The translations under genes and the position numbers were made by a program. DNA of 64,000 nt from Botryllus schlosseri (lineage: Eukaryota), in the NCBI GenBank assembly GCA_051294905.1, contig CM119383.1:23560001-23624000 (forward strand). Reading direction: 5' to 3'. Numbering within the stretch: position 1 is the stretch's first letter; every line of letters starts with the position of its first letter. Below, piece by piece: positions 2,577 to 20,300 of this stretch. The notes beneath the pieces are model-generated. The model was given only the letters and a program-made list of their open reading frames with translations, was not told the origin of the DNA and did no database searches.

Positions 2577-3608
2577 ATTACTCGTCTGCATAAATAGGAT
2601 ACTTTGACAGTATAACCATAGATTGGTTAGTTATCTATAGTACAACATGGCATACATGGCTTCTCAACTCATAAACGTAAACAGCTGAAACAAGACAACA
2701 CCGGTATTCCTAAAACAAACCTGCCAGTGCCAGGCGCAGATGATCCCTTGCGAGTCTGATTCATCACAAATGAACTCGATCGCAGTTCATTAGTTATTTT
2801 CCCGCGTAGCAACAGTATAAATACTATAAAATCGGCGACCCCTTGCGAGTATGAATTTCGTAAATGAGCTGAACGTCAAGCTTGTGACCGACCCCTTGCG
2901 AGTGTGAATTCTCACAAATGAACTCGTCAAGTCATCAGTACGCGCGTACGAATCGCTCTCTCCGCGTAACCTCCGCGTAATGTCCGCGTAAGAAAACGAG
3001 AGAAAAGAGGCTCTTTACGCGCCGAGCAAACGAGAGAAGAGCAGAGAAAGGAAAGAAACTAAAGAAATGCTTTAAATGCCCTATACGCCGTACAATTTTA
3101 CGCAAATGTGACCGATGCTTAAATATCCTCATGACCAGCAGTGGGAGGATTCATTCCATTTATTCTCTGATGTCTCCATCCAGTGAAATTGCAGCGAATC
3201 ATTAGTGCACAGTAGGGCTGTTCAAAAATAACCTTTTTTCCTGAATCTTGCTGGTTACTCGATTAAATCGTTAGATTGCCTTAAAAAACGACGAACACCA
3301 AATTTGAATTCATTCCAACCAATATTCGCGGATTTCGTAGAGTTTGAAAATTTTGAATTTGCCTAAAAATGCAAAAAAAAATTTTTTTCTAATTTTTCTG
3401 CCAACCCCATGAAATTGTCGCGCTGTCTTCAAAAACGATGCAAAACAAACACTGTAAAAAGTTTTAAGATTATCACCGACTGATTAGTCTGGTAATTTCG
3501 TTATCAAAGTCGAGTATCTATAAGCGTGGCATGCCATTTAACCTAAGGCAAATTGTTCGATTGTTGCGCTGCGATTGACCAAAGCCGCTAGATTCAGTCG
3601 AGCGTGAC

Positions 3609-4516
3609 TTAACAATGGGAAACGGGAGTTTCCGTTCCATAGTCACATTCCATAGTTATATCCGTAGCTTCCTCGGGAGTAACTGCAATATCAGGAACTG
3701 GCTCATTGGTTTTTGTAGCAAAATTGTGCAAACATATTGTTGCAATGATTGCCAGGATGGTGTTTTCGATTTGCATTCGCATAGGATTTAGCAACATCTG
3801 GAAACGCAAAAGCATTGCTCGATCAGCATGCATGTCTTTGAGTGCATATAGCTGTATTTTTTTTCTTGTCCAAGCTGTGGATTTGGTAATGGAGTCATCA
3901 GGTACATTTTTAGAGCATAGAGCCTCTGTCTCCCGGCACAACAGCATTAGTCACTACCGGTATTCCCTTGGCATTGCAGTCCATTTGACAGTTCGAAGAA
4001 AAATATCCTTTCCTGCAACGATAAATTTTCTGGTACAGAGCCACCTAGGGACTTTTTTGGGATATGGGTACCATCAATGCATCCGATGACATTTGGAACT
4101 CCAGTATGTCAAAGAAATCACTCTTTGTTGGTAACGAATCATCCAATCGTGGGATAAATTTTCTCTATTCACTGATAATGCCCGAGAAATGCAGTGGATT
4201 ATTCGGCGTGCAGTTGTCCGGCTTACACCAATCAAATCAGCATCTGTTTGTTGAAAATGACCGTAGCAAAAAATCGGAGAGCACAGAGTAATTGCATCAT
4301 GGGGTGCAAAGCTTGGCACCGTACAACCAACCATGGGCTGTCTCTAATCATGTCCAATAGAATTACCGTAGCTCCCTTGTAAAATCCGTAGCGGTCAACG
4401 AATTCATTTGCTGGGTATTTTACAAATGAGTCCGATATGTCTGCCAAGGCATGCCTGGGCATAACAATTGTATTCTCGTCGTCCGAACTGCCATCTACGA
4501 TGTCCAAAATATACAA
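3609..4516 (-). pseudogene. Second, frameshifted Harbinger/PIF transposase
   Basis: Fragments in different frames: EFVDRYGF...LHPMMQLLCALRFFAT; GHFQQTDADLIGVSRTTARRIIHCISRAL; a DGTHIP motif at ~4050-4075; IIATICLHNF. Confidence 0.85.
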
Positions 4517-7286
4517 CAGTACCAGTTTGCAATGCCGTCTTTAGAACTTATAACTGTGAATAAACTACAGATTAATATGCATTAAAGCTGCAAAGTGGCT
4601 TCAAATCAATTTCATAAGTCTACCTAGGACACGACGGCATTCATACATAGCACATGACCAAAATCGACATTTCCAATCAGCATTGGCATTGAAGCAATAT
4701 TTGCTACGAAGTCGATGGGTTGACATGGCAACCTTCCACGGATCACTACATTTTGCGTCATTTTGACGCAATAGCGTCCTACATCCTGGATTTGTAGATC
4801 TACTAACTTCGCACGAACATCCAATGTTTTGGCGTGCGGATCATCTACTTCTAAATCGGGAGATCTTGGAACTCGCAGATTAAGCGAAAATCCAGGATGT
4901 TTTTACTCAGCTTTTTGGCCTCCACCCCAAGTTGTATTCTAGTATTAAAGGCTTTTTCTACCACGGTAGTTGATGTGATATGATCTATGACATACAACAA
5001 AGTTTCCGTCATACCAAAATTCCGAATTATTTAATCCTTATTTCTGTCAATTATGATGAGTGGACCCCTAATTAAAAAAATCCGTCCTTCTAAATTCTAC
5101 AACATATGTGTGCATGTGGAAATATGCAAAATGTTAGGAAATACAATTTCGACATGGATGCGTGTTTTGTTCACTTTTCACGTGTTCAACAGTATTTAAT
5201 TTCAGATAAGAAAAGTCCAGTTAAAGTAGAGAATTGAGTCGATTCCTATAGTTCCTGGGACGTCGTCGGTACTTGCTTTAGTCCTGCCCACGCAAGACCA
5301 ACCGATCGCTGCCTAATTTGACGACGAGATCGCCGACCAGGATCTGATCGCAGGCTTGGACTTTTCCGAAGACGACTCGGTTAGACGAGCACCGCCACAG
5401 TCGACACACCACTGCGTGTGCCCATGCTGGCGCGACAGCCTAGTCGCTACACAATCGCTCTCCAAGCATCGCAACGTAGCAAGAGTCAACAAGCGATAGG
5501 CCGACATCACCGTGGCTGTTATCATGAAGAAAGAGAAGCAGCAGATTTTCAAGTACAACACGCGCGCGTTCGCTCATTTGTAAATATTACGCATGTAATT
5601 ATTCCGCTGTTCTGTAATATACATGTAAGTATTGTCCACGTATGGTGTCGTTGGATGCATCTAGCTGGAAAATGCGTTGCGATCATTTCAAATCAGGCGT
5701 CGCTTCAAGGGCTTGAGCTGGATCAGTCGCTCGCATATTTCCGGTTCGCGAACCTTCAATCGTTTAGTTAAGTATGGCTTTGGCTGGATCAGCCGCTCGC
5801 ATAGTTGCATTTGACTCAAGTGTTCGGATTGAGCAGTTCTTAGACTTCGTGCTTTAAGCTATCGTCGCGTGTTTTGGTTTGTCGAACTGCGTTCGATTCC
5901 ACCGACGTAGAATTTCAAAGACCGTGCCGGTTAATCGCCGACGTTTTCCGACTCGCGTTGTAAAACAAAATGGCGGACTGCACATGCCTGACGTGCGTGA
6001 TCAACAGTTCCTTCTGGTGTTTTTGCATCGGTCAAACAAAGGCATGTGCTGTGCATTTACGGTAATGGATTTCGTTTCTGTATGCAATTGCTATGAATTT
6101 ATATCTAAATGTCTTCAAGCAGGATGGCGACACTGCAAGTATTGTCAATAACAATAATCCTGTTAGGCTATTATATTCTGGTCGCTCTCCGATGCTCGCG
6201 TCAAAGGGCGCGGGTCGCGCTAATTGGGCATCGAGTTGTACGTCAGGCTGGTGCCTAGAGGAATCTCTTGTCGTCTATCAGTGGTTCTCAACCGCCGGTC
6301 CGCGAGGAATATTACAATTTTATACTTTAATTTCAAGATGCAATGTTGAAGGCTTGTTCTTTGATAAAATAAATAAAACATCTATTTTTAAACTGATTCA
6401 AAACTTTGTGAGGTAACATTAGGGCTAGAAACATGTTCGATTTGACTTTAAGTACAAGACGTTTCATCTGAGGACATGCGAGCGACAAATACAGAACAGA
6501 TACGAGCTCACTCATCGCTAAGCAGCGCAGTTTGATTATTGGTTTTCGATTCCGTAACTGGGGCACACCAAACCGCCCAATTGGAGAGGGGCCGAGCTTG
6601 AAATGGGCCTAAAATTATTGTGCAAATGAACATAAATCACAGCGTTTTATTTGAAACTTTTACCAACATTTTTCAATTTCTTTTCGGGCTTTGCACGATT
6701 TAGTGTCCCTGAGGGTGGGTTTCAAATAGTCAACTTAGGCCCGTCGTCGGGCTTAAGCTACATCCCTCTGCCCTAAGTCAATTTCAAAACTGTGACTTAA
6801 GGGGATTTCCCTCCTTTTCAAAAATCGGAATCACAGCCGCACTCAAAAATGCGAATCACAGCCGCCTATTTCTTCGAATACTGTGCGATAACGTGCTGAA
6901 CGTTTGCCAGATACTTCCTCGGGGTTCTGTTCTGATCGTCCGTCCGTAAATTTCAAAAACTCAAGCAATTGCATATTCCTTCACTGCGTCAACGACATCA
7001 GCGAGCAACTCAAAGCAATAACAATCTGGCCTCGGTTCCGTGTTGAACTCGCCACAGCGACGAAGTAGACAGTAATTACTCGCAACTAACGGACTTGGCC
7101 GAGCGCGGCGCCAAATTGACATTTGAAACCGAAGTAAGACCGCCGACCAGTGGTGCCACTCCTAGTGTTTTAACACTAGATCTAGTGTTTTTTCGGTCGT
7201 CCTAATGTTCTAGTGCTTTTTTTCGCACAATTTTGCTAATCTAGTGTTTTTCTGCAAGTGTGCGGACAATGAATATCCTAACATTA

Positions 7287-9340
7287 CACTGTAAAAAATC
7301 TGGTACAGCTACTGGGAAATCTCTGTAAATTTTACCACGAATTACCGGTCGCAGCCAATTACTGTGCGTAGCTTGTCGTTTTACATTTTGATATGTAATA
7401 TTACCTTAATATAGCTGTGATGTAAGTTACCAGAATTTCTTTGCAAAATTACTGACAGTTACTCGTTACTGCAGTTTACCGGGCTATTGGCAAAATTGAT
7501 TAGCTTCAAAATCGCTGCAGCCAATGTATACGTAGAGCTGAATGTTACTGATATATCATTCTAGAGGTGATTTGACCTGATTGAACCTCGTTTGCGAGAC
7601 TGGGGTCTGTCATACCGAAATTGTTGGCCCTAGTATCAATTTAAGCTTAGTAGGGTACAAGAAATAACTGACAATCGTAGCTAATGTGGTACACCGTAGC
7701 CATATTATATTATAAGGCAATGGCTGTACGGCCAGTCTCGCTGGTTACATTCGTTGTCACGGATAAGGCTGATAAGTTAGAAAATTAGTTCAGGATGTAT
7801 AATATTGCTCGGGGAAACTAGAAATATCAGCACCGCACGCTCAGCTGACCATTTGTTAATGGCGGACAAGGCGACCTGTAATAGGTTACATTAGGTGACT
7901 GCTTTTTCTGAGATTCGTAGTAAACAACCAACGCACAACTGTGACATCACAAGCAGCGTCTGGTTAGGTAAGTACAGTAAGTAGTGAACAACACATGGGA
8001 TATATATCAATTTATACGAAATTAGATGAAAAAAGGGACTATATGCAATGATAAATGTTTCTGTATGAAAAAAAAGACCCAGATCAATCATTATAACGTG
8101 GCCAGTAAATATTATTGGTGTCATGTGTCAGCGGATGAATACCATTTATTTCGAAATCGTTCGAGTGTCGTCTGGCCAGTGGCCATTAGTGAGATTTGGG
8201 CAAAGGGTGGAGCGAAGCTTGATGTGCTTGAAGAAAGTGGACCCGATCGTTGAAGATTCCTAGGAATGCTGAATGGAATACGCATCTTAAAAGGTAATAC
8301 AGTACTACATACTATTTGTTACCGTGAATAGGATACTCTGCACACCAGCCCTCGATGACTTAGATTTCATGATTGATATATTTCATTCGCCGCATTCTCT
8401 GTTCTATTTTGGGCTATTTGTCGACTTCTATAGTGACCACATACTCCGCTGCGGAGGAGTTGAAACTGTTGGCTTGGTAATGTCATTTTCGGGCCATAGC
8501 ATAGATATGTTTTCACCCACTGCTGGATTTGTTTGCCACACATGCCACCTTAAATTAGGAACCTTTTGCTTCCATACAGAGATAAAGTCATTCATGAATC
8601 TTTGCTATGTCATGTAAAAGGCGGAGCCGTCATCACACAATGTGCCAGTACCGGTACTTCAAAACATGTTATATTTTTGTTAGCCTATTTGTCTTAGTCT
8701 TTATAATGTCATGTCCACTGTCCAGGTTAGGAACTTTGCTTTATAAAGCGACTTACGCATGAATTCTTTTTAGTGGAACTGCAAGATACTACTTACACAG
8801 AAGGAATGAGAACGAGAAAAAGAAACAATTGGAAGTTTGGCCTGTGGTGGAATTAATTCACGTTTTCTCGAGACCACTCGTGTTACTGCATGTCTCCTAA
8901 AGAAGAATTAGACCTCCAGCAGCAATATTTTTCCATCGATAACCACTTCATCGTGATATCATGAATGAATATAAAGTTTGTTCCAATGTCGTTTTGGGGA
9001 TGTGAAGAAAATGTTGCGATATTTTTGCATCGGGTTGCTTTGCGATAGGTATGGATGTACGTGAATTTACAAGCTGGTATGTAATCCTGATTTACAGGGA
9101 CAGCATGTAGGTAGGTAGGCGGTAAAATGACAATCTCGATCACAAATGTACAGGAGAACATGTAAATTAGATATACCGGAGGTGACTGTAACATTACAGT
9201 CTGGCGTGTAAAGTGAGATTACCGGACGAGTGTAAGTTAAATTTACATTGACTAACGGTAATGTTAGATTACCACGAAATGTCTGGCTACCGTGCTTCCA
9301 AACATTTCGCGGTTAATCGAGGTTTTTATTTTTTACAGTG
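7287..9340. mobile_element. Non-autonomous CACTG-type (EnSpm/CACTA) element
   Basis: CACTGTAAAAAA at 7287 and TTTTTTACAGTG ending at 9340; 2-bp TSD TA on both sides; GTAA/TTAC-rich subterminal regions. Confidence 0.8.
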
Positions 9341-10066: not shown

Positions 10067-10492
10067 TTTTCTCTTACTCTGTTGAATTCGTTTCATGAAT
10101 TTTCGTTGAATACTCATGCAGTATATCATACATTGTATCGAATTCGTCTGGTAACTCGGTCAAGGAAGCGTGATCACGTAACGCCGATTCTTAGATCCCT
10201 TCATTGGTTACCCGTGAAATTTAGGTCTGAATACAAGCTTCTTCTGTACGTCTTCAAATGCATGGAGGGAAGTGCACCAACGTATCTTCGTGAGCTAGTG
10301 ACAATGTATAATCATAGCCTTTATAAGATAGTCGTTACACTCCATTGTTTTCTGTGGCAACTATCGGCGGGGTAGCGACTCCTGGTGGTGATTGGTAATA
10401 ACTTTATTTTGAGTACAGTGTTTCACTATAGTTTCAGTTATATATGTTGCACAGCAAGTTATTTCTACACATTTCAAGCCTCGAGAACTAAA

Positions 10493-13400
10493 ATGACTGC
10501 GAAATCGGGAACTAGTAAGTTAGCGAATGGGAAGTATTGCTGTATTCCGCAATGTTGTAGTTCTACTGCAATCGGATTTCGTCTGTACCTTGTTCCAACT
10601 GGTGACAAACGTCGGTTTGGAGTTAGTACTAAAGAATGGGCCAATAAATTCAAGCAGGTGAGGCTGTAGCGTAGGTAGAGCATTGCATCATTTCTTATAT
10701 TTGAACGGGAAGGGTTGTTTATCCAGCATGAAGGGGCGACGTATGCTGCAAATTTAGATAGGCATTGTGAAAGCAATGTTGCTGTGTTCTTGTGTATTGT
10801 TAGCAGCATCGTTTTGCATTATTTGTAATCAGTAGTCTCAAGTGTTTGAAACATGCCGGTCATGTATGAGTCGTTGTCTTGTGATCACACAATTTCCTGC
10901 GACTGTGAGCACCTTACTTGCTTTAACTTGAAGAATCATCGCTGCATACTTGTTATATTAGGCAAAACGTACTGTGATTCCAGCCGGAAGGAATAAAAAT
11001 ATAATTCACTCCAACTGTTTTCAATAGACTGATAAACAATACTTAATACTAATTTCCTCATTTCAGGTTATTTTCAAGTATCGGTACAACACTGATTTCA
11101 AAAATAAGGTCAATTCTGGCAAAGCATTCATTTGTGAAAACCATTTTGAAGAATCAGACATTCAGGTCTCCAGCCAAAGAAGCTGGCTGAAGCTGGGAGC
11201 TCTACCAAAGATATGTTTGCCACAAAAAAGTCATCCCACAATCATTCCAGAAACTCGCCGAGCGATTATCAAGCACCATATCCCAGAGAAGACAAAAAAA
11301 GCTATCCGTTATGAAAGCATCGATGATATCTTTTCAACGTACAGTCAAAATGTGGTCAGGAATTGGCGTTGCTACCGAGTAGATGAGAATATGCTTCACT
11401 TCAACTATTATGAGAATCCGTTATTACATGCATACAGCTCGATCAGCTTTCTTGTATGGAAAAGAGGAGAGGAATTTTCAATGTCATTCAGTTTCAGGGG
11501 AACCATGAAGGACATTCCAAGTATGACATTGCATGATTGTAGCATTCAAGATGTTTTACGTCAACTCCAAAATTACAAGATATGTAGAGGATATTCTAGT
11601 GTTAGCACTGACAAATGTTGGATATCGAGGAATATATATTGCATACAAGCAGAGCATGAGAAAGTGGAAACCGAAACAAGGTAAGAAAGTGCAGCAATCT
11701 AGAATGAGGTTGAATACCAATGTATGTTTAAAAGCAGGGTCTCTCAAAAATGTTTTCATTGCAAGGTGTATGTTTGTTTACTGTATTGTTTCAGATATTT
11801 CAGTAGTGACTGCTTGGCAGCCGATTTATCAGTTTTGGGTGGTGTGGCATGCCAGGCATGCTCTCGTCTTCATGTCAAGTTGGATGATAATGAGAAGAAG
11901 AGATTCCAGAAGCTCAGTAAGGTAGTAACAGTACCCATAAGTAAGCGATCTTCGCTATCGAATGTCTGTAGAGAGAGGCTGGAAGCTTCATTGGATTTGA
12001 GTCAGCAACGGTAGGCTGTTGGTAGTTTTGCCAAATATTGTGCTGTCATTGAATTTATTTATAGTGTCAGCATTCTTGAAGATCAATTGAAATATAATGG
12101 AGTTGAAGTCTCAGATGAGCTTGCGTCAGCTGTTGATGAGTTATCCAGTACCGATAGTTTTCTGAAGGAATGGCGTCACGTTCAAAGAACTCTACAGCAA
12201 GCAGGGAACAAAAATTCCCATAGATATCCCCCGTCCGTTATTCGGTAATATTTTCAAATAGATCAGGCACATCTGTCATTGCATATCCTGATTTAATATT
12301 CCAGCTACTGCTTGAGTCTTTATGCCAAGTCACCTGCCGCTTACAATTATCTGAAGAAAATATTTGTCTTGCCTTCAAAAAAAACTCTCTGTTTGAGAAG
12401 GACTCAATATTTTGGCTCGTGTAACATTGGCTTCCAGAAGAAATTCGCTGATGAATTAGCCGAATCAATAAGCAAATCTACAAAAGAGTGTGACAAATAC
12501 GTGATTATTGCAATTGATGAATTATCAATCAAAGGTATATTTTTTTGCTGATGATATGTATATTCTTTTAAAAAATGGTCATAACAATTTTCAGAGGAGC
12601 TTGTTTATCGATCTTTCTCCAATGATATTATCGGTTATGTGGACTTCGATGATGAGGTATATAATGACATTTCAAAAAATGGAAGTAAAGTGGCCAATCA
12701 TATCCTTGCTGTTTATACGAGAGGTGAGTTCCAGTGCTCTTGCATGTGGTGCTAACAGCAGGCACAACATGTACTGTACACTTTCAGGGATAACTAACAA
12801 TGGATTGGACGGTGTAGTGGCCTTCTACCCTACTGCCAACGTTGACTCGTCAGATCTCTTTTTTATACTGTCTGACCTACTCGTCGAAATTCAACACAGC
12901 ACTTCTGCCATTATAGTTGGAATTGTTTGTAAGTGTGGATCAGGTGCCCTGTCATTCATGTTTGCACATGTATCTCTTCTTGGATATTTTCAACAGTTGA
13001 CGGTCTTGCTGCCAACAGGGCGGTAATTAACCTTCTTGCATCCCCAGATGATAATGCTGCGGTGCCGTATAGGATGAAGAACCCAATCCATCCGGACAGG
13101 TTGATACTTTGATGCATGCAAAAACTTTACCAGATCAAGTTATTTTCGGTTACAGATTTATATACTTCATCCCTGATCCACCTCATTTGCTGAAAACTAC
13201 CAGAAATAATCTCCTCAACAAGAAGAAATGTCTTTGGAATAATGGACATATATACATCGATCCGATCAAGCAGCTGGTCAGAGTAGGTGTAAATTTTGGC
13301 CATTCATCTCAATGCACCCTGCTGCAATCAATTCAATCTGTGATGAATCTAGATAGATTTAAATACTCCAAGCTTCGCTTCAAATTGCTATGGCCAAATT

Positions 13401-14116
13401 GAATTATTCCCGTTTTTTATTGGAACAGCGTGATTTGGCACGAGGTGAATTGCGCATATATCCGAAGCTCTCCGAGGCGCATGTGGACCCTAACCCATGG
13501 CAAAAAATGAATGTCAGGTTGGCTGCTCAAGTTTTGTCTCATACTGTAGGTATGTGGAACTATTTATTCGATACAAATGAGGAACCATCCTATTGCACAT
13601 TATGATTTCATATTGTTAAACACAGGTTCTGCGATGGAGAAATTGGGCCACACAGCCCTTGGTGGGTTTCTGTTGATCATGGACAAATGGTTCGATTGTG
13701 TTAACGCCGGCTTCCAAGGAAGAATCTATAAAGATTCCAGGACGCCTTACAAAAGTATTGAAGATGAACGGCTGTACTGGCTTTCAACTGACTTTATTAA
13801 TTATCTGGAAAGCTGGAATAATGCTGCTGCTTCTCGACCACTTGCAGGCGAAGTCAATAGAGAGATGATGCTTCTGTCCACTGCCACAAGAAATGGACTG
13901 CAGATCGCAACTCTCTCCATTGTTGCCGTCATTAAATTGACACTCCAGAGTGGAGCAGAATATGTGTTGCCTCGTCGTATCAATCAAGATCCTCTTGAGG
14001 CTTACTTCGGAAAACAGCGAGAAAATGCAGCTCGCACTCGAAATCCTTCGGTTTCTGCATTCCTCTCAAACAACAAAAATATTGCAGTGCTGAAAAGCAC
14101 CAAGAAATCACTTTGA
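10493..14116 (+). CDS. P-element/THAP9-like transposase, 11 predicted exons, 836 aa, no stop or frameshift after splicing, lacking the usual C-terminal domain
   Basis: Exons 10493-10657, 11067-11680, 11795-12010, 12065-12244, 12305-12534, 12595-12723, 12788-12928, 12997-13099, 13156-13276, 13429-13549 and 13626-14116 total 2511 nt; all introns are GT-AG and phase-compatible. Motifs: THAP (CCIPQC...ICENHF...LGALP), LYAKSPAAYNYL..LPS, IDELSIK, FDG..ANR, DPPHLLKTTRN, KMNVRLAAQVLS, QDPLEAYFGKQR...NP. The intron 9 donor (GTCAGA) is the weakest. Confidence 0.9.
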
Positions 14117-15079
14117 TCTCCACAATTTTCATTCTAATTAAATAGTATATTGAAGTTCTGTACCTCCAAGAAGCTCTTCAAATTTTCATTCTGGTTTCAT
14201 GTACTATCAGTAGGACGATTTTTTTGACATTGTAAAACGAGTCAAATTTTTCAAAATTGTAAGCCTTATGTCAAAAAATCGTCAATATCGTTTACAAAGT
14301 CACAAATTTTTTGCAGCCTGCAGTTCGTTGATATCGCAGATGTTTGCACTGTCGGTGAACTCCATTTTTGGCAAGCTACTTGTCAAAGACATGGACTTTC
14401 TGGCTGAGAATGTAGGTAAGTATGTTCCATTGTACTACAATAAATTTTATTTATTTTTACCATTTTTAATTTCATGTAAAAATTCATCACTTTTCAAGTT
14501 AATAAGTTTTTTCAGGCCAAGCTACTTCTTGTGGACAGACAGTTCGAACCAGAAATTGATTCATTCTAACAGAATGTTCGGAAACGCCTAATTTACATGA
14601 GGGCAAATTTTGTCAAAATTGATTTTTTCAACATCAAAAAAAGTCAAAACTTCAATTTTCAGTGCAATAGCAGATATTTACTTGATGTAAACCAAGTGTA
14701 AATGTAGTTGAATCGTTCGATATATGGGTACCTGTTTGATCAGACCAGTTGACATCCAAGCTCGTAGTGATCATTCATATGATATCTGTTCCTGGATGCA
14801 TATTTTATGTACCACCATTATTGCTGTATCCTGTTATGTAACGATAATAAAGACTCTCTCTCACCTGATCTAATACTATTTTGAACATAATGTAGTCCAA
14901 GGAGTTTTTTATTCATGAAATCACAACAAGATTGTGATATAACGGAAAGACAGAGGGCGGTGCAGAAACGACTTGGGAGTGGTATTTTAGTTAGACACCC
15001 ACCTTTGGACTAAAGCATGTAAATAAGCAGCCAAAATGCAGTCAAGTCAAGACTCGAGTAATCTCAACACTGCTTATTA

Positions 15080-17021
15080 TTAGGTAGAACATTTCTTCAG
15101 CCTTTCGCGAAGACTTGCCGATGATGAAAACGGTGTTATCGTTAGGGCTGGGCACCATGATTCGAGTACTCGAATCTGAATCGAGTATTAACTTCAATGA
15201 TTCGAGTCGAGTAGTAAAAGACGATTTTTTCGAGTACTGAAATTATACGCTCCTCGCAACTAAAAGCTAGTTTACTAACGAGAAGTATAGTTTGGATAAT
15301 ATTTTCCACTAAGGAAGCGTTGAAACCATGATTGGCCGTGTCGCAGCTTACGAGACATAGTACAAAGCTACTAACGTTATTGGAAATGACACATTTCCGA
15401 AGTCATGATCATCCTACAACATTGTCAAGAAGTGCAATGAAATCGGTATGGTCGAAAAAATACCAAAGTATCTTTAATGTGACGGATAACAGGCATTGTG
15501 TTGTCTGTGGTGGCATGAAAGGTACATATTTGAACTTTGACATCGTACATTTTGTTCTGACGTCATAATGAGTGATACTCGAATACTCGACTCGACTCGA
15601 AGAGTAATACGTGATTCAGAATCGAATCACTCAGGTACTCGATTTTGCCCAGCCCTAGTTATCGTACGTGTACGACAGTGAATATACGCTCTGGCTCTAA
15701 TATATTTCCGAATCATAGCTTCCACCACATTCCGGTCTCTATCATTATAATATTGATACCAGTCTGTTCCACACAAAATAGTGCGTATATCAATGAATTT
15801 GGCAGGTAACTGTTTTCGGAAATTGCGTTCTACTTGTTTAAACATGTGGAAGTACTCATCCTTTGGGACTATCAAACTTCCCCTGTTTCTTGACTCGTAC
15901 TCATCTGGTAGACAACCTTTTTTTGAGATTTGATTTCGGCACCATTGGTTGTCTTCCCCCTGAAATTTCTTCAAACCCCATCGAAGAGTTGCCCCCGCAA
16001 GATATTTCATAACTTTTTCATCATCGGCGGTCACACCAATCTCTCGAAGGCCCTTGCTTTTTTTCCAGGAAAGTTGTTGTTGAATAATAATCGGGCAGCA
16101 TTCCTTCAATACACGTTTAACGGCCGTTTCTTCAGCCAAGTCATTTGGACAATATTGCTTTTGTAGTTTACTTGAGTACTCAAGCATCATCATTTGCTTT
16201 GTATGGCACTCAGCAACATGACACACGTCTTTTAGAACTTCATCATGAAGAACGGATGTTAATTGAATATTCAAATTTTTTAGAACTTCATCCACGGTTT
16301 TTTGACAGTAAGGCTTATCGCAGCCCATCAAAACCTCAACAACGTCACAAAATGGATTGGCTGTGTCTTCTGCAGAAACCGAAAGTCCTGGGTCCCCTAT
16401 GCAAACATCTTCTTCTTGGTCCTAAAATCGAAAATGTTCAGTGAATGTAGATACATTCCGCGGTATACAAGGGAAATGAGAGAGTTGAAGTAAATAGGAA
16501 CAGATAACTTCAGACTTGGACAACTAGAAAATTGCAATTGATTTTCCTGTACAAGAGGCATTTTCTTGTTAACTTGTGCGAAATGCATCGGACTAAGAGA
16601 CATTTTGAGGTAAACCACAAATTAGATAAGAATTAAAATTAGAGCATAGAAACATTTCACAAAGTAGGCTAAAATTAGACTACTGGCATTTTGCTCTAAT
16701 TTAGTCTTTAGTCAAATTAGACTAGAATTATCTAGTTGTCCAAGTCTGCATTAGACGGGGCGAAAAAGAATGACCAGCATTAGCAACAACAAAAGAGTTC
16801 ATAGCAAGTGGTAAAGTGATTTCGTTTTTATTGGTACTGGCATAGCCGTTATGTAGGCTATACTACAGGTATACGAATATACCGGTATACAGTATCGATA
16901 CCTGTACCTGTAAGGCAACAATTTTACAGTTTTTGGTGATCAACATTATTGTCAGGTAACGCATATACTCAGTACTCACGTCATCAAACAACTGTATAAG
17001 CTCTTCATCTGACATATCCAT
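15080..17021 (-). CDS. Second P-element gene (~286 aa when reconstructed), resembling the P-transposase C-terminal domain; 3' end interrupted by a hAT MITE
   Basis: Exon 1 (17021-16980, MDMSDEELIQLFDD, donor GTGAGT) splices in phase to exon 2 starting at 16421 (DQEEDVCIG...). Motifs KYLAGATL, NRGSLIVPKDEY, FKQVERNF, KYIRARAYIH. Removing the MITE restores RTITPFSSSASLRERLKKCST* with the stop at 15080-15082. Confidence 0.75.
15143..15657. mobile_element. hAT-type MITE (515 bp)
   Basis: TIR TAGGGCTGGGCA; 8-bp TSD GTTATCGT at 15135-15142 and 15658-15665; subterminal GAGTACTCGA/ACTCGA motifs. Confidence 0.92.
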
Positions 17022-17204
17022 CGTTAACAGTAAATCAATATCCGGCAATACAGGAAAATAACACTGCGTCGCATGAAACTATAGTTATCTTTCAGGTAAC
17101 AGCTGTCAGGAACAAATCCACCGCTAAGTGTCGCCGTCCCGCCATAGTTGACAATGGAGTGTAACGACTATCTTATAAAGGCTATGGTATAATCCCGGAA
17201 GAGA

Positions 17205-17379: not shown

Positions 17380-20300
17380 CCAGAATGGATAGTTCACCTC
17401 AGTCGTTAATTTCCGAGGCCAGACAAATAGAAGAAGAGATCGAGTCGCATCAACTAGACGTGCTGCGAACGAAAATTGAATACCTCGAGGTGAGAATGAC
17501 GAACACCGAAAGTAGAGTATCGGGACAAATCGAGCGCATCTCAGAAAAAAATCTACTTGCTGTAGAAGAGATGATCGACCGAAAAATGCAGGCGTGGGAG
17601 ACCAGAATTCTTTCGGTAATTAAACAAAATGCAACGTACTGTACCGGAACAGACTAGTTCTGAAGATAAGGGCAGTGTTGATCGTCCATGTGTTTCTGCT
17701 CCGAATGGGATTAATTCCGACGGTCCAATAGTTTCAAGCAGCAAGAAATCAACTGAAATACCAGTGCCTGGTAAGCCTATTCATCTGGAATCGAAAACGC
17801 CAAATGTTCTACCTAATAAGTTCAGTGGAACAACGGATGTGACGTTAGAAGACCATCTAAGTCACTTTGAGTATGTTGTTGGCTGCAACCCATCTTGGGG
17901 TGTACGTGAAATTCTTTCATATTTTGGCTGGAGTCTGGAAGGTCCCGCGCTGAAGTACGCCAAGGAGGTTTCCGCCGAGGATTCCCAAAACTTCGACATA
18001 ATAGTGGAGCACCTCAGAAAACGTTTTGGAAAGGAGCAATCGGGACAAAACTCGAGAACTAAGTTCAACAGTCGAAGGAAAAAGCCGAATGAAACCCCTG
18101 CTGCATTTGCTGCTGCTCTCCGAGAACTGGTACGTAAAGGCTACAAGATGATAAACGGTAATGCTGCAGAGTTACTGGTACGTCAACAATTTTGTCAAGG
18201 GTTCTCTGATGTCACACTGTGTGGTATGCTTGCTGTGCGTGAGAGTGACAGTTTAGAGGAGTTAGTTCGTGCTGCTGAAAACTATGAGTCCATGGCTGCT
18301 ACTCATGGGGCCAATGCGGGCACAATAAAACCTTATGTGGCAGTGGTTAATAACTCTACTCGCAAGGCTGACTTGAACTCAAAATCAGAATGTGATGTAT
18401 GTATTGGGGAATTGCAAAACCAGATTAAGTCCTTGAGAAATGAGTTGACTGAGTTATTTAATAAAAATCGTGTCCCAGATAATAATGCGAGTCGTCCGGA
18501 TTCACCAATTAGAAACCATGAAAGTCCCAAGTCAAAATTCTTTGGTAAATGCTTCAGGTGTGGCAACCCAGCAAACACATAATTGCCTAGGGCTATCCAA
18601 GCAGTGTCCGAGTGTCCCAGTGTCCGGTTGGACAGACGTGGGCTAATACTTGGCTATCCACGTTGGAAAATGTCCGGTTCGGATATTCTAGGACATACAT
18701 ACAGAAAATCATTTCGGATAGTCCACTAAAAGTCCCAATTCAATTTCCAATGGATATCATAATCTGACAGTGTGCGGATATTTCCATGTTGTATCAGCTA
18801 AAAAGTCAACCACTCAAGTTCTTGCTGATAAGGGCACATATTTCATCCTTTCAAAATGTTTCAAGAGTACAGTTCGAAAGAAAATCGCACGTTTACACAC
18901 CGATATTCGGGATAGTCCACTGAAAGCGCGAATCAGAATTCCAATGGATATCATATTCGGACAGTGTGAGGATAGCTCCATTTTGTTTCAGCTATAAAGT
19001 GAACCTCTCATTAACTCCTGACGCTGATATGCACAAGTTGCACACATTCAGTATTTCAAAATATTTCAATAGAATTTGAAGGAAAATCGTCACTGGACAT
19101 GATTCTTCATAGCGACGTCACGTAACCGGATTATGCATGCTGTCATTGAACGGTCAATATTCACTGTCGGGCCTACATTTCAAGCTTTTAAACATTGCCA
19201 TTTCTGTGCCCTTTTAGCTGTCGTGTTACTGATTGTTCCTGCGGTGAACATTCGCAATTCCGAAAGATGTTACGAACTTTTCGCGTGCGTCATTCCGTGA
19301 GATGTTTAGCGTTTTTCACTTGAATGCGTTCAATGGGTCGGCAGAAATGACGACTGCGCACAGTGAATCTGACTTGATCGCCATATAATTTACAGGTATT
19401 ATATGCTGGTATATTGAATAGTTAATGGTATACTCTATTATCGACTTCGATAATGGTACATTCTCTTTCGTACTTTTATTTCGAGCATGTAATAAACTTT
19501 ACAATTTGACAATTACAATTTTTGTACCTCATAATGTTTTACCGATGTTATATAGCTAAGTGATGTTACCCCACTGAATACCACTCAACGATTGACGAGC
19601 TTTCCTCGTGCGTCGCGCCATGCCTGAAGTGAATGAGATCATTAGCCTTTTTCATCCATATGCGCAGTGGCGCATTGCGCAGCGAGCCCAGTTCACGTGA
19701 TTCAAATTTTCGTCTGGGAAGTTTGAACCGTGATTCTTTGAAGTGAATTGTTGTTAGCGGCGAGAAGCATTTTCGACATTTGCTGTGTGCCACTTAGCTC
19801 GGTGATTACCTAACCATAACCACTGGTTGTAGCAGTGTAGTCAGTCAATGATAATGATACGGTTATAGTCAGAAGTGGCGTATGTGCACAACGAAAATGC
19901 GCTTGGTTATTGAATCCCTATATAGTATTAAAGAGCTATTATGACGGATGTTCGGTATAGGTAGGTAGGTAGGTAGGTAGGTTTAGAGTTGATACTGTTA
20001 TAGTACGTTCTTTTATTGTAACCAAACCTGATTTCTTGATCAACATAAGGTAAGAGTTACTGTTTTGTGATTTATGACTGGAAATGGATTGGAAGGTACA
20101 GAAACATTTGACTGACCGCAAGCTATCAGAATTTTTGAATTAGACCGTAACCCAAATTGAGTGATAGACATCCCTACTCAAGAGTCGTGGTTGCTGGTAT
20201 TTCAATCATGATATTAATGCTTGGCTTCCAAATTGTATTATTGAAGTACCGATATTCAATTCTACCCAGCCCTATATATATATGGTTTGAGTACTATATT

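Follow-up and report, generated by a model that had tools for sequence, protein, structure and literature searches.

A P-type transposon of Botryllus schlosseri with a probable two-gene transposase

A stretch of 64,000 nucleotides from the genome of Botryllus schlosseri (GenBank assembly GCA_051294905.1, contig CM119383.1, positions 23,560,001 to 23,624,000; hereafter the window, by whose own numbering features are located) contains a P-superfamily transposon of 6,874 bp at 10313-17186 that carries two genes between its terminal inverted repeats (TIRs). Gene A encodes a catalytic transposase of the P/THAP9 type that stops before the C-terminal domain (CTD), and gene B, read from the opposite end of the element towards A, encodes a homologue of that domain. 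The two products probably make up a single transposase in which B serves as a non-covalent CTD subunit. The P element transposase is a textbook enzyme, yet its CTD was first seen structurally in 2019 and the role of this domain has been inferred from contacts in one complex. The element described here is a variant of the P type, and the absence of the CTD from the catalytic polypeptide is its distinguishing feature.

Gene A and the ends of the element

The 46-nt TIRs and the 7-bp target-site duplication GTATAAT agree with membership of the P superfamily, in which TIRs are accompanied by duplications of 7-8 bp. The features that define the element and gene A are as follows.

10306..10312, no strand: left target-site duplication GTATAAT, identical to the 7 bp at 17187-17193
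10313..10358, plus strand: left TIR, beginning CATAG, 46 nt and 91% complementary to 17141-17186
10493..14116, plus strand: gene A, a multi-exon P/THAP9-type transposase, from exon matches in Pfam, alignment to 6p5a_A and splice models
13997..13999, plus strand: codon for the catalytic Glu of NQDPLE, which the alignment to 6p5a_A equates with Drosophila E531
17141..17186, minus strand: right TIR, 46 nt, pairing with the left TIR
17187..17193, no strand: right target-site duplication GTATAAT, the same 7 bp as in the left flank

Gene A begins with an ATG at 10493 and has its stop codon at 14114-14116. It encodes, in order, a THAP-like C2CH signature, a helix-turn-helix (HTH) and an RNase H domain into which a GTP-binding domain is inserted. 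The exons match the Tnp_P_element HTH family of Pfam (PF12017) at E 5.8e-5, above the cut-off of that family, and match PF21787, PF21788 and PF21789 (TNP-like RNaseH_N, GBD and RNaseH_C) at E 1e-3 to 1e-2; by Pfam, A has both the P-type HTH and an RNase H domain that contains the GTP-binding insertion. The N-terminal signature (C-x2-C ... C-x2-H, with an ALPKI box), which would belong to a putative THAP zinc finger, can be seen across exons 1 and 2 and is split by an intron. The NQDPLE motif aligns with NQDIVE (E531) of 6p5a_A, and AIDELS and VDGLAANR fall on the DE and CDG columns that are invariant among relatives; judged from these alignments, A appears to possess the catalytic acidic triad. 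Splice-site dynamic programming gave products of 868-934 aa from 9-13 exons across models. GT-AG introns suffice to join every conserved block with no frameshift, the product is collinear with single-ORF (open reading frame) relatives from molluscs down to the same short tail, and gene A of the window copy looks intact.

A preliminary description of this DNA, made from the letters alone, gave the transposase 836 aa, which is a plausible length, and had it end about 25 aa after the QDPLE...NP block. The frame does close in this place, 38 residues past the Glu of NQDPLE and 22 past NP. By alignment this end is equivalent to residue 569 of the P transposase, which is the final residue of chain 6p5a_A. 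The Drosophila structure 6P5A comprises two deposited chains, A with 569 residues and B with 135 (of which P residues 617-734 were matched here), and the linker between the RNase H part and the CTD is disordered in it (PMC7776569). The CTD is not encoded in the same polypeptide as the catalytic core but on the opposite strand, and a CTD-less A is found in the sibling families and in molluscs also. The preliminary description had allowed that A might be spliced into a further exon downstream; no such plus-strand exon is available, and no CTD-like plus-strand ORF was found between 14117 and 17140.

Gene B and the P transposase C-terminal domain

Gene B starts at an ATG at 17021 and is convergent to A within the same TIRs. 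Its features in the window copy, which is interrupted by a miniature inverted-repeat transposable element (MITE), are as follows.

16980..17021, minus strand: exon 1, 14 acidic codons, MDMSDEELIQLFDD, joined to exon 2 in contigs of runs X1 and X2
16422..16979, minus strand: intron, GTGAGT...TTTTAG, from a contig joint of 16420 to 16979 and the splice-site sequences
15627..16421, minus strand: exon 2 in its present form, open as far as 15627-15629, where it meets a premature stop within the nested MITE
15645..16040, minus strand: part homologous to the P CTD, model residues 106-237 corresponding to P residues 617-734
15143..15657, no strand: nested hAT-like MITE, with ends TAGGGCTGGGCA and TGCCCAGCCCTA, interrupting B
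15080..15134, minus strand: displaced original end of B, the last 17 codons and stop, its S-L-R-x-x-L-K tail matching the sibling alignment

The motifs from which the preliminary description proposed that B encodes the P CTD as a separate gene within the same ends are found in the minus-strand ORF at 15627-16331, which bears KYLAGATLRWGL, NRGSLIVPKDEYFHMFKQVERNF and RKYIRARAY. The proposal agrees with profile searches, with the predicted fold, and with the conserved pairing and purifying selection described in the next section. Profile searches, structural comparison with an AlphaFold 2 (AF2) model, a search of AlphaFold DB and Pfam matches in a distant relative lead us to conclude that B is homologous to the stretch that comes after the RNase H domain in fused P/THAP9 transposases.

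Profile searches covered 177,635 PDB sequences and used three nested alignments: 16 B paralogues of this genome with 26-76% identity and frames almost all open (A1), 15 B genes verified to lie beside a short transposase gene in this genome, Littorina or Mytilus (A5), and 55 B relatives forming a broader profile (A2). With A5 the only significant match was 6p5a_B (E 2.5e-4, residues 9-132 of 135), and with A2 the same chain was matched at E 1.2e-8; the B profiles therefore reach a bona fide P CTD at significant scores. A single-sequence search of PDB with B alone gave no match. The distant B relative P0061 from Mytilus matches Tnp_P_element_C at E 2.3e-4 (22.1 bits against a cut-off of 22.6 bits) and has THAP9_C among its precomputed Pfam matches. 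Sub-threshold Pfam matches of the B paralogues (Fer4_ETF_QO and Duffy_binding) were set aside as chance.

The AF2 model of B is all-helical, with a predicted local distance difference test (pLDDT) score of 92 and a predicted template modelling (pTM) score of 0.79. Structural similarity of B to the CTD, on which the preliminary description had made its proposal depend, was found in this model: the best structural match in PDB is 6p5a_B, with Z 10.3 and a root mean square deviation of 2.6 Å over 112 of 118 residues, and the next match, at Z 7.6, concerns a different part of the model. As predicted, then, B has the all-helical fold of the P CTD. Foldseek gave a probability of 0.92 for the model against 6p5a_B; against PDB and Swiss-Prot models its E-values were weak (0.44-0.6), with P and THAP9 entries highest in probability. 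In AlphaFold DB the whole B model finds its matches in the last 200-280 residues of models that bear the name P transposase or THAP9, as well as in stand-alone C2H2 proteins.

It is very improbable that B is an unrelated helical protein, captured or derived from the host, which resembles the CTD by chance. In favour of this idea, B gives no direct Pfam match and helical folds easily reach middling structural scores; but 6p5a_B is the only significant match in the whole of the PDB set with the three nested profiles, its structural match covers 112 of 118 residues and stands above every other row, and the motifs common to B and the CTD (Y-I/L-A-G, R/H-G-G/S-L-I-x-P, E-x-x-F and I-R-x-R) occur in register.

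The preliminary description gave B as a spliced convergent gene running from 17021 to 15080. The convergent direction, the location inside the TIRs, the ATG at 17021 and a real GT-AG intron at 16979-16422 all stood up. The intron is absent from contigs of two public runs, in which 16979 is joined to 16420 (CT..AC on the plus strand, which is GT..AG on the strand of B), and these contigs most likely derive from transcripts. What had been taken for a last intron is the MITE, and from the end coordinate 15080 it follows that the MITE had been read as spliced out. We rejected that reading, since the empty site is exact, the ends are non-canonical (TA..AC on the coding strand) and the contigs are about 2.5% divergent.

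The MITE is 515 bp long, is present in hundreds of genome copies at 91-96% identity and has very high depth in all runs. It is flanked by an 8-bp duplication, GTTATCGT, at 15135-15142 and 15658-15665, and MITE-free contigs show the empty site as a joint of 15134 to 15658 with 8 shared letters and one copy of the duplication. The original stop of B, at 15080-15082, is now stranded beyond the MITE, and the conserved 17-residue tail with S-L-R-x-x-L-K has been cut off. Because this conserved basic tail was lost to the insertion, the window copy probably either relies on B supplied by another source or has ceased to be autonomous.

Other repeats and relatives of the window copy were observed. The intron of B holds a small element at 16511-16748 with 23-nt inverted ends that are 96% complementary; contig depth is high in this interval, some contigs skip about 180 bp, and it is a second nested repeat in the window copy. 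Just past the stop of A, about 45 bp at 14137-14183 have a depth in the thousands in all runs, with many loose ends on both sides, and are a fragment of some very abundant repeat. The host site of the element (10082-10375 and from 17187 onward) is a decayed repeat-derived ORF containing HVTPILRSLHWLPVKFRSEYKLLL, and a gag-like ORF with a CCHC-type motif lies at 17629-18582, beyond the right end of the element. The nearest other copies of the window element are a deletion derivative, a truncated copy and a sibling at 80-85%. Internally deleted derivatives of the window family occur at C15:2013982-2017034 and in a contig of run X2 that joins 11407 to 14514; most of A is gone from them while the ends and the region of B are retained, and the B of the C15 copy has two TGA stops.

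Conservation of the gene pair

A six-frame search of the genome found 54 B-like stretches and 55 stretches like the last exon of A. Pairing was counted at the 34 better B loci, with a last exon of A within 6 kb scored as a neighbour. Such a neighbour was present at 24 of the 34 (18 convergent, and 6 on the same strand with B upstream), against a chance expectation of about 0.1% per locus. The A and B pair occurs in at least five diverged families of this genome, each with its own inverted ends and 7-bp duplication. In the four sibling families that were excised, inverted ends of 29-98 nt, of the CATAG or CAAAG kind, enclose both genes, with 7-bp duplications, and in two of these families the ends are 100% identical. 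Naturally intact elements with 100% identical ends and open A and B lie at C3:472131-477381 and C9:4607687-4612187. The convergent 3' ends of A and B are only 150-200 bp apart in some families. Two chromosomes bear copies with identical scores for both genes, which suggests recent movement. The preliminary description had reckoned with siblings that generally lacked B or had a full-length A; those found here retain B and have a short A.

The pair is also present in a more distant family, in which an A ORF of 400 aa (Pfam matches at E 1.7e-20, 1.1e-13 and 1.2e-5) stops 44 residues past the Glu. Its convergent B, of 228 aa, reads YIAGYI...YYIRIRCY and is related to alignment A1 at 92% hhalign probability. 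Between subfamilies B has a ratio of nonsynonymous to synonymous substitution rates (dN/dS) of 0.13-0.19, and between recent copies the ratio climbs towards 1, as would be expected if the active lineage needs the gene.

Outside this genome, a B-like gene is convergent to a P-like transposase gene in Littorina saxatilis (CM074561.1) and in Mytilus edulis (CAJPWZ010000721.1), and the partner transposases stop 48-63 residues past the catalytic Glu. By Pfam, RNaseH_N, GBD and RNaseH_C are present in related mollusc transposases of 840-945 aa, which show no C-terminal or THAP domain. The mollusc B-like proteins have an extra N-terminal C2H2 finger, and in molluscs the finger that binds DNA may have been transferred to the second subunit. 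In a library of 1.8 billion proteins all 99 relatives of B are short (64-442 aa), none of them is a long transposase, and in almost all the match to B is at or near the C-terminus.

These families bear on whether the appearance of two genes is an artefact, either of an inversion of the 3' part of a single-gene P element or of a missed plus-strand exon of A. The window copy is otherwise rearranged, with two nested insertions, and in one family A and B share a strand, both of which would suit an artefact. However, a convergent B that has an ATG, an acidic first exon and a GT-AG intron of its own recurs across two mollusc genomes and no fewer than four diverged families; those families have intact inverted ends and target duplications, the stop of A is at the same place in all, the same-strand family has B upstream of A and not downstream, and the interval 14117-17140 has no plus-strand ORF like the CTD. 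We give such an artefact hardly any credence. The sibling families, together with the profile and fold results, exclude in practice both an inversion and a chance likeness of B to the CTD.

The sibling family with the same-strand layout was seen at C8:27640000-27649999, where the element occupies 3340-9027 of the interval and has 98-nt inverted ends with B upstream of A. Because a mirrored copy of the first exon of B (MDLTEEELE...) lies near the far end of this element, at 8836-8867, the arrangement suggests that an ancestor with convergent genes was rearranged to give the same-strand layout. The ENA contig ctg8866 has, in 3538-8789, a P-like HTH exon and, some 4 kb downstream and on the strand of that exon, a B-like ORF of 262 aa; the later exons of A were not found on this contig, and it possibly represents a third layout or a decayed copy.

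Interpretation and comparison with known systems

The CTD in the strand-transfer complex of Drosophila is placed between one subunit's RNase H domain and the GTP-binding domain (GBD) of the other, where it touches the looped-out transposon strand and target DNA, with its basic end facing the target (PMC7776569). The mechanism that we propose is that of a P-superfamily cut-and-paste transposon with its transposase coded by two genes. Gene A supplies the DNA-binding and catalytic part (THAP-like N-terminus, HTH, and RNase H with the GTP-binding insertion) and ends where the Drosophila P transposase enters the disordered linker, at about residue 569. Gene B supplies an acidic N-terminus, a helical domain and the all-helical homologue of the P CTD, and this protein most likely docks non-covalently at the CTD position on the A dimer to give the contacts with transposon and target DNA. 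We infer that B would bind A and act in trans, both proteins being required for transposition.

Several points weigh against this interpretation. Direct Pfam searches with B and 15 paralogues, of the kind that the preliminary description had recommended for B, gave no meaningful match, and PF12596 (Tnp_P_element_C) gave none at E <= 10; the profile built from the paralogues of this genome only (A1) has 6p5a_B as its sole PDB match at a marginal E of 0.13. B is truncated in the window copy. The runs with spliced B are only guessed to be RNA, and their contigs, about 2.5% off the window, represent another copy or haplotype. RNA raw-read run X23 has reads on the nested repeats, a handful on B and none on the exons of A. 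In a complex prediction with the Littorina transposase (335-844) and its B-like partner (225-437), the partner folded poorly without an alignment, and the result neither supports nor counters binding.

The main rival explanation is that B is a regulator derived from the CTD, a dominant inhibitor or an agent of copy-number control, and that A works alone or with host factors; in spirit B would then resemble the 66-kDa and KP proteins, truncated repressors made by Drosophila P. Truncated repressor proteins are indeed known from P elements (PMC7776569). A and B are transcribed as separate units, each from a promoter at its own end of the element, and could be regulated independently, and the short distance between their convergent 3' ends in some families would permit antisense interplay. 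Against this, the known P repressors retain the N-terminal DNA-binding part and not the CTD, A is without a CTD in every family seen, and in the solved complex the CTD makes many DNA contacts (PMC7776569). The tight and long-lived linkage, the strong purifying selection on B and the recently identical ends fit a required component better, and we consider a regulator unlikely.

If B is a CTD subunit, a wider reading is favoured with somewhat less assurance: that an old clade of P elements, extending across phyla with members in this genome, in gastropods and in bivalves, works with a transposase of two obligate subunits, produced by the natural division of a DDE transposase at a flexible linker, in which the second subunit gained a zinc-finger module in molluscs; the clade would still be mobile in this genome. 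The signs of mobility are the families with 100% identical ends and the identical copies on different chromosomes. The full-text literature yielded no published account of two-gene P elements; Repbase Reports were outside its coverage, and a prior entry there is possible.

A separately encoded CTD would provide a direct handle on the role of this domain, since it could be added, omitted, titrated or swapped between families, and the natural split would mark the disordered linker as a true module boundary. The P superfamily would be added to the small number of eukaryotic cut-and-paste transposons in which two proteins encoded by the element are needed. The families of this genome with perfect ends are candidate active two-component elements, and a two-gene structure matters for any use of such elements as tools. 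It matters for annotation too: the mollusc B genes are at present filed as ordinary host proteins (C2H2-type or uncharacterised) and not as transposon genes.

The closest known systems are the P transposase of Drosophila melanogaster (751 aa; PDB 6P5A/6PE2) and human THAP9, which likewise belong to TIR-bounded elements with target duplications of 7-8 bp and have an all-helical CTD with the same motifs and fold as B. In Drosophila P, however, the CTD is part of the same polypeptide by way of a disordered linker (residues ~570-616), whereas here A stops at the position of residue 569 and a separate, mostly convergent gene, with about 100 extra helical residues at its N-terminus, provides the CTD. 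All five families checked here have target duplications of 7 bp, compared with 8 bp in Drosophila.

Stand-alone mollusc proteins with Pfam THAP9_C, such as XP_070189241.1 (Littorina) and CAG2199464.1 (Mytilus), are homologous to B (E 8e-8 and 2e-5, respectively, in the library of 1.8 billion proteins), have the same conserved S-L-R-x-x-L-K tail and are encoded convergent to a short P-like transposase gene. They differ from B in the added C2H2 finger and in that their partner transposases are without a Pfam THAP domain.

The preliminary description also drew an analogy to the two-gene Harbinger transposons, which holds for the organisation and not for membership. PIF/Harbinger elements (and Nuwa) are, like the element described here, cut-and-paste transposons with two genes, one for a catalytic protein and one for a separate protein, of the Myb/SANT type, that binds DNA; here too the second protein is expected to add DNA contacts, and the mollusc relatives of B even carry a C2H2 finger. 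A DDE transposase of the PIF/Harbinger type with a Myb/SANT partner was not what we found, A being P-type and B CTD-type. PIF/Harbinger is an unrelated superfamily with an unrelated second protein, whereas B is a detached domain of the ancestral transposase architecture.

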